DNA from: Corallochytrium limacisporum Hawaii
Lineage: Eukaryota > Protista > Pluriformea
Reading direction: 5' to 3'
Assembly: GCA_002811645.1 (NCBI GenBank)
Contig: PDIP01000005.1
Coordinates: 135,198 to 199,197 of the forward strand
DNA: 64,000 nt
A model generated the notes under the pieces. That model worked only from the letters and a program-made list of their open reading frames with translations. It had not been told where the DNA came from and did no database searches. The position numbers and the translations under genes are program-made. Below are positions 40,605 to 43,131 of the stretch, in pieces (position 1 is the first letter of the stretch; the number at the start of each line of letters is the position of its first letter).

Positions 40605-41737
40605 TCTTCCGGAGTTAGCCCAACCCTAATCCCTGTTCATTCTTTTATGTTGCATAAATATATGTATACATGAAATTACATACGAAATAAAGACAACAGG
40701 CCGTTCAACGAATTCCCTATGTTGCTCTACGTATAGCAACAACTACTCCCTTAAGTAAGTGTACAGCCCTACATGCGAAAAACACCCGCAAGAAGACCGA
40801 CCTGTCTGCACCTCCGATAGGGTGCGCCTTCGGCCGGTTGCAGAGAGATGGGGATTAATTGCGATATCAAACGACGCGACGTTCCGGTGTCCAAGCCAAA
40901 CCCGTACTGAATATAGGAATGAATTACACAAACAAGTGTCGCGTACTGTGCTCTGCCTCCGATGTCTCTCCCGAAGTTTCGAGCGTCCTGTCGGCTGGGG
41001 CCAAGGGAGACGAGACCAAAGTAACACAGAGTGAGTCGAAGGTGGCTCGGCAGTACTAAAGCTTCCGTAATTACGCAGGTAAGGCCACTGTGAGTCCCTT
41101 ATCAACAGGTACTATCGGAGCAGAAAGAGAACCGCTCGGAGGGGGGGGGGAAGACACGGAGGGCCAGGAAAAGAGGGGCGGGGATTGGGGCCGACCTCTG
41201 CTTCCAATTCAGCACCGGTTGCGGTTTCCATGCCCAGGCGAGAAAATGGACCCCCGGTGCCCAGTGCTTTTTGGAGACCGCCTTTCACCAGCAGGGGCAC
41301 GCACTATTGGACACTGCGTGGACGGGAAAGGGGCCCGGGGGGGGTGGGAAGGGTATTAGTTTTGTCCCAGTCACCAGGCCATAAGAACGCTGAGAAATTG
41401 AGCGGAGGAGATACCCAGGTTTGTGTGATAGTATGACTCTGCGGGGAGGAATTTCACGGTCGAGGTTTCTGAGAAACTTCTTACCCTACGCTATAGGTCA
41501 CGAGGCCTATCATCTCCGCTGTCTGGCGGTAGGGAGAGCCGATACTGGCTGGATCTGGAGGAGCCGCTTGGGGAATTCAGCGCATCGAAAATTAATCGGG
41601 GAGGGCACACTTCCGTCCCTTCATGGTGTCCATCTCTATCTATATAAACTGCCAGGTTTCTCGCGACATATTGACCTTTTGATCCAGCACGATATCATGT
41701 TTTGATCATATCTCCAACGGACGGAACTTATGTCAAG

Positions 41738-42499
41738 ATGGGGGTAGAGACAAGCGAGAAGAAGAGGTGGATGGAAATGGGCTCCATGACTGAGGAACAG
41801 GCTTGGACTCGGTGGCATGGTTTGCTCAAAGGGCTCCCGGACGATCAGATGAGGGCAAAGTACAAAAAATCAATGACTGCAACCAATGACTACAAGCACC
41901 CTGCACCTGCCCGCGATGCTAGGGTAGTGAGGCCGGATCAGTCGGACGATGAAGTCAGCCTGCTGGATCTCATGAAAGAGGAATGCAATGCTGCGGGTGT
42001 CAGGTATATGGTCTTGAACTTTGGTTCGTACACTTGACCCCCGTACAGGATGAACCTCCCGAGGGTAGAGGGAATCCTCGAGGAGCACAAGAACAAGGTG
42101 CGACTTCTCCATGTATACATTCGTGAAGCGCACGCTGCGGACGCGTGGCAACTTGACTCCAATAAGACGGATGATGTGTGCTACATGACACCTAAGAGGC
42201 TTGAGCAACGTCTGGACATCGCCAAGGACATGCTAAGCAACATAGAACTTAAGTACCCATTAATCTGCGACTTAATGGACGACAATTGTTCCACCGCCTA
42301 CGAAGCAATTCCGGAACGGCTGTACATCATCGATGTCGAGACGGAAACAATGATTTGGCGGTGTGGTATTGGCCCGTTCTGTTACGATTTGAGTGGCTTG
42401 CGCGCGACGCTTGCCAGTCTACCTAGCAAACCCACTGTGCCAAGTGGTCTCAGGAACGAAGGAGTTGTTGAAGTCACGCTTCCTAACGCTGATCACTAA
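41738..42499 (+). CDS. Iodothyronine deiodinase-family selenoprotein (253 aa; in-frame TGA 42035-42037 read as Sec100)
   Basis: ORFs 41702..42037 and 42050..42499 share a frame; joined they read VLNFGSYT[TGA]PPY..VYIREAHAADAW..DLMDDNCSTAYEAIPERLYII, matching the DIO motifs LNFGSCTUPxF, IYIEEAH..DGW and AYxAxPERLY. Confidence 0.93.
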
Positions 42500-42544
42500 A
42501 TGGCTTGAACACGCTGAGCAAACGGTGGAGACAATATTGCAGGA

Positions 42545-42627
42545 ATCTTCCTTACCATGATGCCGCCTGAATCCAAATGAAGAGAAGGACAGGAACCAAG
42601 ACATAACGGCTGACGAACTAATAGATG
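42545..42627 (+). promoter_or_regulatory. Candidate SECIS element (atypical, 13-nt bulge in helix II)
   Basis: AUGAU core 42557-61 / UGAC 42611-14; GCCG/CGGC, CCUG/CAGG, UCC/GGA pairs; apical AAA 42575-77 located 13 nt after the core; 58 nt downstream of the DIO stop. Confidence 0.55.
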
Positions 42628-42791
42628 GCGCGGGTTGGGATCAATTTCCCTCAGCTGAGATCCCACATGAGATTGCCGCCATCATGGAGAATTTTGCAAG
42701 ATGACGACCGCTCTACCCAAATGCTCCTGTAGGTAGGTGACCACGAACATCGCATTAAAGGAGATTACAAACCCCTTCCGCAAAGGGACAG

Positions 42792-42807
42792 AAAAAAAAA
42801 GATAAAA
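42792..42807 (-). terminator. RNA polymerase III terminator (T4 then T9) after the permuted tRNA
   Basis: Minus strand reads ..AATGGG-TTTT-ATC-TTTTTTTTT immediately after the 5' half. Confidence 0.8.
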
Positions 42808-42813
42808 CCCATT

Positions 42814-42911
42814 CTGAGCTACGCCCCCAACAGTACATATTCAGTACTCAAATGTGGAGGCGAGGGGAATCGAACCCCTGGCCTATCGCATGCGAAGCGA
42901 TCGCTCTACCC
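42814..42911 (-). tRNA. tRNA-Ala-CGC: Permuted tRNA-Ala(CGC): 3' half 42911-42855, 26-nt spacer, 5' half 42828-42814
   Basis: Rejoined 72-nt cloverleaf GGGGGCG-UA-GCUC-AG|GGGUA-GAGC-G-AUCGC-UUCGCAU-GCGAU-AGGCC-AGGGG-UUCGAUU-CCCCU-CGCCUCC-A; all stems pair; G3:U70 and A73 alanine identity elements. Confidence 0.93.
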
Positions 42912-42944
42912 TAACTCATGGGCGTCGAGTCACCAGTCATGATG

Positions 42945-42985
42945 TACCGACTAAGCTAAAGAGGCGAAAAATTAATATATATATA
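42945..42985 (-). promoter_or_regulatory. Pol III promoter elements: extra A box TAGCTTAGTCGG (42958-42947) and TATA tract (42976-42985)
   Basis: Matches the A-box consensus TRGCNNARYNNG; lies upstream of the T-loop B box GGTTCGATTCC. Confidence 0.65.
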
Positions 42986-43131
42986 GCTTATGCATATTGG
43001 TGATCGGGAGTCTATTTATTTAATCTTTGCCGTAGCGAATTGCGTGAATGGAAATCTTGTTCATTACCTGCGTCACCATTGCAGGCCTTTTTAATGGTGA
43101 ACTAAACACACGATCCATGCCTATATTTTCA

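Follow-up and report, generated by a model that had tools for sequence, protein, structure and literature searches.

The sequence analyzed is a stretch of 64,000 nucleotides (nt) from contig PDIP01000005.1 of Corallochytrium limacisporum Hawaii, and is referred to as the window. Its minus strand carries, between positions 42986 and 42792, the two halves of a transfer RNA (tRNA) for alanine with the anticodon CGC. The halves are in inverted order, i.e. the 3′ half precedes the 5′ half. The order of elements on the minus strand is promoter box, leader, 3′ half, linker, 5′ half, trailer and T-runs. The elements are listed below; H denotes the central helix of the proposed splice motif and h′ its outer helix, RNA polymerase III is abbreviated Pol III, and BHB stands for bulge-helix-bulge.

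42961–42986, minus strand: upstream promoter box CTATATATATATTAATTTTTCGCCTC, consisting of a TATA-like element and ATTTTTCGCC; this is the genome-wide tRNA box
42955–42960, minus strand: TTTAGC, probable transcription start region, judged from the spacing in other tRNA genes
42924–42951, minus strand: leader hairpin GUCGGUACAUCAUGACUGGUGACUCGAC, present in both the minimum free energy (MFE) and the centroid folds and adjoining the outer helix
42918–42923, minus strand: leader strand GCCCAU of outer helix h′ (G at 42923, CCCAU at 42922–42918); its partner is AUGGGU of the trailer
42914–42917, minus strand: leader strand GAGU of central helix H; its partner is GCUC, D-stem nt 10–13
42912–42913, minus strand: leader UA, the last two nucleotides removed; 3′-side cut predicted at 42912/42911 by the BHB rule (register 1, see below)
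42855–42911, minus strand: 3′ half of tRNA-Ala(CGC), nt 16–73, GGGTAGAGC...CGCCTCCA, as given by ARAGORN on the joined sequence; G16 is at 42911
42829–42854, minus strand: 26-nt linker with the hairpin AGUAC-UGAAUAU-GUACU at 42848–42832; RNase P and tRNase Z would remove it
42814–42828, minus strand: 5′ half, nt 1–15, GGGGGCGTAGCTCAG; GCUC at 42819–42816 is the H strand, and A14 and G15 (42815–42814) are the bulge nucleotides retained
42807–42813, minus strand: trailer, with A 42813 (third bulge nucleotide, removed), AUGGG 42812–42808 and U 42807; 5′-side cut predicted at 42814/42813
42792–42806, minus strand: T-runs (TTT A TC TTTTTTTTT), putative Pol III terminator; similar T-runs end all tRNA genes of the genome

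When positions 42828–42814 are joined to 42911–42855, ARAGORN identifies the resulting 72 nt as tRNA-Ala(cgc) and folds them into a perfect cloverleaf. The joined sequence displays G3:U70, U8, G18G19, U33, the T-loop TTCGATT and the D-loop AGGGGTA. Both halves are undamaged and every conserved tRNA position is present. The genomic (unjoined) order gives no match with ARAGORN or Rfam, as is expected for a permuted gene. The arrangement is the one by which permuted tRNA genes are defined (Soma et al. 2007), with the 3′ half upstream of the 5′ half on the same strand, and with joined halves that form a canonical cloverleaf. The leader, which is ~43 nt long, was also considered as a relic of tRNA nt 1–15; this was rejected, since the two agree at just 2 of 10 bases.

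The flanks of 35 nuclear tRNA genes of this genome were compared. Nearly all have an upstream TATATA, followed after 1–4 nt by ATTTTTC(G)CC, and their leaders are 0–65 nt long. An element similar to TTTCAG or TTTAGC is often found ~20–30 nt past the TATA element, and the tRNA genes with the shortest leaders start ~25 nt after the TATA element. The pattern ATATAN{1,7}ATTTTTC has 47 matches genome-wide compared with 10 in a reversed control, and at least 18 of the matches adjoin tRNA genes. In the window the box (42986–42961) precedes the 3′ half, T-runs (42806–42792) follow the 5′ half, and inspection of the 26-nt linker showed neither a promoter box nor a T-run. Because of this layout, the locus appears to form one transcription unit, and we infer a single Pol III transcript that would start near 42960–42950.

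Several other observations concern the box, the linker and the opposite strand. Matches to the promoter box are also found before non-tRNA sequences (L085 at C227:4471, L091 at C268:59943 and L074 at C33:195863), and these may be other Pol III RNAs. Hairpins of the type AGTAC-loop-GTACT recur in the genome; in addition to the linker (42832–42848) they are found in the leaders of L002 and L044 and in the trailers of L051 and L061. The linker sequence AGTACTGAATATGTACTG is closely similar to the leader of the Arg(TCG) gene L002, GGTACTGAATGTACTG. The transcriptome contig X1 at 41711–42890 represents a neighbor gene on the plus strand and runs antisense into the tRNA 3′ half; the 3′ untranslated region of the neighbor mRNA and the tRNA gene may overlap on opposite strands.

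The splice junction and the precursor fold

A scanner for BHB motifs was applied blind to the locus. It looks for a 4-bp helix H that is followed on the 3′ side of each strand by a 3-nt bulge, and places the cut (marked below by an arrow) after the second nucleotide of the bulge. The flanking pairs are counted on the exon side (h) and on the removed side (h′). All pairs of exon end and exon start are tested, and those whose product is accepted by ARAGORN are kept.

The scan recovers a leader-trailer pairing with H GCTC/GAGT, bulges AG↓A and TA↓G, h of 0 and h′ of 6 (AUGGGU/GCCCAU, 5 Watson-Crick pairs and 1 G-U pair). This solution is termed register 1. The initial annotation had described the same junction by eye as a relaxed HBh′-type motif; all of its elements are present in the sequence, including the bulge AGA and the helix CCCAU/AUGGG, with one leader-end coordinate off by one. 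What had been missed is that the trailer sequence A-G-A-A lets the bulge slide by one, from AGA to GAA. This second solution of the scan, register 2, has H CUCA/UGAG with four Watson-Crick pairs, cuts at GA↓A and UU↓A, and a 9-nt D-loop AGAAGGGUA (DNA AGAAGGGTA). Register 1 corresponds to junction 15/16 (type V) and is favored by the homologues described below; register 2 lies one position further 3′ and is favored by the folding ensemble. Two further solutions, in which 42801/42800 is joined to 42902/42903, are tolerated by ARAGORN and were rejected, as the 3′ strand of the D-stem and G18G19 are deleted.

The pairing is BHB-like in having an H of 4 bp, one 3-nt bulge and an h′ of 6 bp. It is not a strict hBHBh′ motif, in which both flanking helices have at least 2 bp, since h is 0 and the second site is not enclosed. 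By the legend to Figure 2 of PMC3978253, the predicted motif is of the relaxed HBh′ class.

The frequency of such a motif by chance was estimated by holding both halves fixed and shuffling the flanks (leader, 25 nt; trailer, 12 nt), with any register giving a D-loop of 7–11 nt allowed. A 4-bp H with at least 6 flanking pairs was found in 1.0% of the shuffles, and in 0.6% when random flanks were used. A chance of ~0.01 for the junction motif is modest when taken alone and strong when taken with the comparative data.

With a precursor start at 42955, the unconstrained MFE is −56.6 kcal/mol and represents the conformer in which the leader pairs with the 5′ half, compared with −52.3 kcal/mol when the D-stem is forced. 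The forced D-stem thus folds ~4 kcal/mol worse, and its probability (P) in the precursor is ~0 for starts between 42962 and 42945. This agrees with the earlier proposal that the central helix takes up D-stem nt 10–13 and excludes the mature D-stem. The helix cores of the motif (h′ and H) have P of 0.92–1.0 for the same starts and three 3′ ends, with 0.77 in one end combination. The start originally suggested, 42965, is less favorable: the motif P falls to 0.33, and the ten extra 5′ bases compete.

The second cleavage site differs from the initial description, which treated UAG as a 3-nt segment. In the folding ensemble, G10, A9 and U8 have the leader nucleotides U, U and A as predicted partners, at P of 0.99, 0.95 and 0.86, respectively. 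With its U and A engaged in this way with A9 and U8, the second “bulge” would not be free. In the predicted fold UAG is a frayed helix end at a multiloop, with the second cleavage site at the end of a helix, and is not a free 3-nt segment.

tRNA genes and splicing enzymes of the same genome

The assembly searched has 24,109,830 bases in 286 contigs, and the catalog of its disrupted tRNA genes is partial. A T-arm pattern gave 53 matches compared with 18 in a control; used with the promoter box, it led to disrupted tRNA genes that are missed by the standard model. The Rfam tRNA search of the assembly scored 63 of 584 candidates.

Five genes with introns bear on the cut rule (SeC, selenocysteine; iMet, initiator methionine):

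Gly(GCC), L076: 49-nt intron at 59/60; H TTCG/CGGA; h 5, h′ 5; bulges AT↓A and AG↓T
SeC, L058: 56-nt intron in the T-loop; H TTCG/CGAA; h 4, h′ 4; bulges AT↓A and AT↓T
iMet, L073: 57-nt intron near 43/44 and 31 nt at 37/38; H ACCC/GGGT; h 4, h′ 5; bulges AT↓A and AT↓A
Ala(AGC): 25-nt intron at 37/38; H TTAG/CTAA; h 5, h′ 0; the usual hBH form
Leu(TAA), L086: intron at 59/60; H TTCG/CGAA; derived by hand

When the cut rule was applied blind, Gly(GCC), SeC and iMet were each spliced into an ARAGORN-accepted tRNA with one sensible solution. A is the first nucleotide in seven of the eight calibrated local bulges, in better agreement with AG↓A than with GA↓A. Judged from these spliced sequences, the BHB cut rule works in this organism, and the predicted BHB sites are at four or more positions. 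This calibration upholds the earlier application of the rule to the window, which gave the D-loop AGGGGUA, and the homologues converge on that D-loop as well. Within the genome AGGGGTA is also the D-loop of the Thr(CGT) gene, and it forms part of the sequence TAGGGGTA found in Pro(CGG) and Pro(AGG).

The 3′ half of Ala(CGC) is unique in the 24.1-Mb assembly by BLAST. No other Ala(CGC) gene was found in the standard-model and box-guided searches, which gave just Ala(UGC) and Ala(AGC); this result depends mainly on the BLAST search with the 3′ half. The codon GCG accounts for 16% of the alanine codons in six genes. Other isoacceptors with C at position 34 that were looked for are all encoded, i.e. 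Thr CGT, Pro CGG, Arg CCG, Leu CAG, Gln CTG, Glu CTC, Lys CTT and Val CAC.

The genome encodes two catalytic subunits of the tRNA splicing endonuclease (TSEN): Sen34 (P0002), with human TSEN34 as its best PDB match (3e-26), and Sen2 (open reading frame at L048), which matches human TSEN2 (2e-22). A Sen54 homologue (P0003) and the ligase RtcB (P0001, 546 bits) are also encoded. The RtcB, Sen34 and Sen54 proteins match EukProt entries with names of the form Clim_evm exactly. A genome search, which had no positive control, found no Trl1-type ligase domain. By sequence similarity the splicing machinery is of the ordinary animal type and is not archaeal-looking.

This bears on the suggestion in the initial annotation that the enzyme has an archaeal-like, position-independent BHB recognition rather than a 37/38 ruler mechanism, and that its gene content should be looked at. 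BHB sites at 15/16, ~43/44 and 59/60 in addition to 37/38 make position-independent cleavage a fair inference. The remainder of the suggestion is overstated, as Sen2, Sen34 and Sen54 are ordinary animal-type proteins and canonical hBH introns at 37/38 coexist with the other sites. According to a published review, every nuclear endonuclease known also relies on the BHB as its dominant recognition element.

A few unusual tRNA loci were seen during these searches. In Leu(TAA) (L086, C238:23477–23873, plus strand) and Ser(TGA) (L051, C11:252412–252924, minus strand), the first 2–4 nt of the acceptor 5′ strand are unpaired with the 3′ strand. A reading of L086 as a permuted gene with a junction in the acceptor stem was rejected by hand, as there is no BHB. 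L060 (C173:7656–8168, plus strand) is a second candidate for a permuted tRNA behind the same promoter box. It shows a T-arm and acceptor 3′ strand, then ~90 nt further on GAACGGG-TA-GCTC-AGTT, a 64-nt insert and GGTA-GAGC; its best D-loop BHB also has GCTC and AG↓T. No clean mature tRNA could be derived from L060, due to an extra C between the T-stem and the acceptor strand, the 64-nt D-loop insert and an irregular anticodon arm. Contig C286 has ~24 tRNA genes in 36 kb and looks like the mitochondrial genome; its tRNA(UCA), called SeC by ARAGORN, is probably Trp(UCA).

Homologous Ala(CGC) genes in metagenomes

Metagenomes were scanned with a 25-nt core sequence extending from the 3′ strand of the D-stem through the anticodon arm, and 35 contigs matched. 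Most of these have conventional Ala(CGC) genes. Several (L101, L106 and L132) read GCTC-AGGGGTA-GAGC and have an identical anticodon arm, and L106 is nearly identical to the joined tRNA-Ala(CGC) product. Seven distinct loci are interrupted in the D-loop, six by introns and one by permutation:

L098 (same as L118): intron of 25 nt; H GCTC/GAGT; AG↓A and AA↓G; h′ TGGGT/ATCCA
L121: intron of 33 nt; H GCTC/GAGT; AG↓C and CA↓G; h′ CCGG/CCGG
L131: intron of 26 nt; H GCTC/GAGT; AG↓A and TT↓G; h′ TGC/GCA
L099: intron of 25 nt; H CTCA/TGAG; GG↓T and AT↓G; h′ TCTGC/GTGGA
L107: intron of 25 nt; H CTCA/TGAG; GG↓T and AT↓G; h′ CTTGT/ACAAG
L124: intron of 25 nt; H CTCA/TGAT (3 of 4 pairs); GG↓T and CT↓C; h′ CTAGC/GCTAG
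L100: permuted, 8-nt linker; H AGCT/GGCA (3 of 4 pairs); CA↓T and CT↓G; h′ TCAGCGG/CCGCTGA

L125, also permuted with an 8-nt linker, was left out of this list, as its register is ambiguous (a 2-nt bulge or a 9-nt D-loop).

In the seven loci the H strand is nt 10–13 or 11–14 and h is 0–2. The h′ sequences all differ and all are still paired, so that the covariation of the outer helix that had been proposed as a check is found across species. With the exception of L124, the interrupted homologues resolve to the D-loop AGGGGTA or AGGGGCA. Register 1 is favored at the window junction because the register 2 D-loop occurs in no other tRNA compared.

The window trailer A-ATGGGT and leader GCCCAT-GAGT-TA resemble the two ends of an intron of the L098 type (A-TGGGT...ATCCA-GAGT-AA). 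Such a likeness of leader and trailer to intron ends is predicted by a published model of permutation, the tandem duplication of an intron-containing gene (PMC3978253). From the sequences, the likeness may reflect either common descent or constraint.

The nearest named proteins to an open reading frame on L098 are from Aureococcus (54%–57% identity), and the L098–L131 contigs are probably from pelagophyte-like algae, a weak identification made by sequence similarity. In related marine organisms the Ala(CGC) locus is syntenic, its downstream flank being shared, and takes several forms: with a D-loop intron, with D-loop and T-loop introns, with a T-loop intron only (L119), and permuted (L100, L125). 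L098 also has an apparent permuted tRNA of the 37/38 type directly after the alanine gene. The reviews consulted list no permuted tRNA genes of stramenopiles. The acceptor oddity of L086 and L051 is found again in the metagenomic alanine genes L099, L107, L124 and L131 (xAGGAAT for GGGGAAT); it may be due to 5′-end repair or editing, or to another hidden gene piece.

Proposed maturation, alternatives and known systems

From the sequence anatomy, the predicted fold, the enzyme genes, and the agreement within the genome and across species, we infer how the locus might be transcribed, cleaved, circularized and put to use. The locus is probably a nuclear tRNA-Ala(CGC) gene of C. limacisporum that is both circularly permuted and functional, with a product matured by a BHB pathway in register 1. 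Pol III would start at the standard tRNA promoter box and produce one RNA consisting of the leader, nt 16–73, the 26-nt linker, nt 1–15 and the trailer, and would stop at the T-runs. The leader GCCCAU-GAGU-UA would pair with GCUC-AGA-AUGGGU of the 5′ half and trailer, forming the relaxed HBh′ signal and occupying D-stem nt 10–13. Sen2/Sen34/Sen54 would cut after G15 (AG↓A) and before G16 (UA↓G). RtcB would then ligate G15 to G16; the intermediate would be circular or, where the ends are processed first, a nicked complex of two pieces. The D-stem could then form, RNase P and tRNase Z would remove the linker, and CCA would be added.

A number of results weigh against this proposal. The motif is relaxed, has no exon-side helix and has a second site that is predicted to be base-paired, whereas introns of the same genome are strict hBHBh′, and the folding ensemble prefers the GAA bulge of register 2 (0.68) to the AGA bulge of register 1 (0.30). 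Sen15 was not found above threshold; the genome search gave sub-threshold matches of 18.6 and 17.2 bits. The Rfam search missed a plain Val(CAC) gene (L078), so its list of missing anticodons is unreliable alone. Ala(UGC) could read GCG by wobble, and the gene need not be essential. Truncated tRNA fragments occur in this genome, i.e. rearranged relics do exist. At the RNA level, two transcriptome-contig runs of 2015 hold no joint and no small RNA, and give no support either way.

The same gene and pathway may operate in register 2, with H CUCA/UGAG at nt 11–14, the bulge G15-A-A, cuts at GA↓A and UU↓A, and the D-loop AGAAGGGUA. This is unlikely. Its H has four Watson-Crick pairs compared with three and one G-U, the GAA bulge is favored 68:30 in the ensemble, the product is accepted by ARAGORN, and L099 and L107 really use a CTCA/TGAG helix. 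However, the geometry of L099 and L107 still yields AGGGGTA, since their exon carries G16, and the register 2 D-loop is seen in no homologue and in no cataloged tRNA of this genome. In addition, three paired leader nucleotides must open compared with two A-U pairs, and the prevalence of A at the start of the calibrated bulges (7 of 8) argues for register 1.

It is improbable that the locus is a non-functional relic of a rearrangement, e.g. of a tandem duplication, which is silent or is transcribed and degraded. With such a relic GCG would be read by tRNA-Ala(UGC), and the UGC anticodon can read GCG by wobble. Truncated tRNA pieces of this kind are exemplified by L059 (C143:118665–119177, minus strand), a tRNA-Asp 3′ fragment (anticodon stem to 3′ end) behind the terminator of a complete Asp gene, and no joint appeared in the two transcriptome-contig runs. 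On the other hand, neither the promoter box nor the terminator is damaged or displaced, the halves are likewise undamaged with conserved positions and G3:U70 kept, and a compensated 10-pair leader/trailer structure is found exactly where a normal D-loop results. Every other C34 isoacceptor looked for is encoded, and the same architecture is kept in several other organisms. L059 itself is a tandem duplicate of part of a gene, and duplications of this type figure in models of how permuted genes arose.

A joining without a circle, in which RNase P and tRNase Z act first and the two RNAs are held by helices (the 7-bp acceptor stem and ~10 leader/trailer pairs could do so) and are spliced like archaeal split tRNAs, or in which a nuclease other than TSEN cuts, is very improbable: the order of steps is probably set by enzyme location (PMC3978253), but circular intermediates were what C. 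merolae showed, the route differs from the proposed one in step order only, and no result here suggests another nuclease.

An animal-type endonuclease works by a ruler mechanism, with TSEN54-based recognition of the mature domain of the tRNA. On the whole we favor the view that an ordinary animal-type set of Sen2/Sen34/Sen54 and RtcB serves, in a unicellular organism closely related to animals, to mature tRNAs that are permuted or ectopically interrupted. If the gene is functional in this holozoan, an animal-type endonuclease can act away from 37/38 in vivo. Position-independent BHB splicing and tRNA permutation would then be no algal or archaeal curiosity; they would be present in Opisthokonta and, by the pelagophyte-like contigs, in stramenopiles. 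The Ala(CGC) genes with a D-loop intron, together with the permuted gene whose leader and trailer match it, would represent a natural snapshot of the tandem-duplication route from an intron-containing gene. Corallochytrium would also offer an experimentally tractable opisthokont for testing cleavage away from 37/38. As the junction is relaxed, uses a D-stem strand and has two competing registers, the real cut would reveal what the enzyme measures. In practice, the tRNA genes of this genome are under-annotated by standard finders, and the same probably holds for other protist genomes.

Permuted tRNA genes listed by Soma 2014 (PMC3978253) number 34, all in six algae and one archaeon. A 2026 review has permuted tRNA genes and non-canonical BHB sites in eukaryotes confined to “certain unicellular algae”. 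Literature searches found no paper that links permuted tRNA genes or tRNA introns to Corallochytrium or to holozoans. The initial annotation had implicitly viewed the locus in the frame of C. merolae, and the host is a unicellular holozoan and no alga. It had also taken 15/16 to be a different junction class; in Table 1 of PMC3978253 the Ser(CGA) gene of O. tauri is already assigned to type V (15/16), with a flag as unverified and atypical. Both the 15/16 class and the relaxed motif were known before; the novelty lies in the lineage and, as far as found, in the Ala(CGC) D-loop series.

Four known or related systems can be compared with the window gene. O. tauri Ser(CGA), from Maruyama 2010 as cited by Soma 2014, is also permuted with a nominal junction at 15/16. 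It is a class II serine tRNA of a green alga, an entry flagged there as atypical and in need of experiments; the comparison with the window gene is by junction position.

The strict hBHBh′ motifs of archaea and the organism's own Gly(GCC), SeC, Leu(TAA) and iMet introns share the cut rule of the window junction (2 nt 3′ of a 4-bp helix on each strand); the endonuclease and ligase are presumably the same too. In these introns h is 4–5 and h′ is 4–5, whereas the window junction has an h of 0 and one closed bulge.

The D-loop-interrupted and permuted Ala(CGC) genes of the metagenomes have the same anticodon arm and D-arm as the window gene, an H of GCTC/GAGT or CTCA/TGAG, and no exon-side helix. 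They have an AG↓N cut after G15 (or G16) and a product D-loop of AGGGGTA or AGGGGCA. Unlike the window gene they mostly carry introns of 25–33 nt, their acceptor and T arms are different, and some have an extra T-loop intron.

C. merolae Leu(UAA), like the window gene, is a permuted nuclear gene with a D-loop junction and a relaxed HBh′ leader-trailer motif, as assigned in the Figure 2 legend of PMC3978253. In both, a TATA-like element lies upstream, the gene ends in a T-run terminator, the linker is short and CCA is not encoded. C. merolae permuted tRNAs mature via a circular intermediate, and circles are the species found there. The C. merolae junction is at 20/21 in a red alga, whereas the window gene has its junction at 15/16, encodes Ala(CGC) in a holozoan, places H on the 5′ strand of the D-stem, and is described from its sequence.

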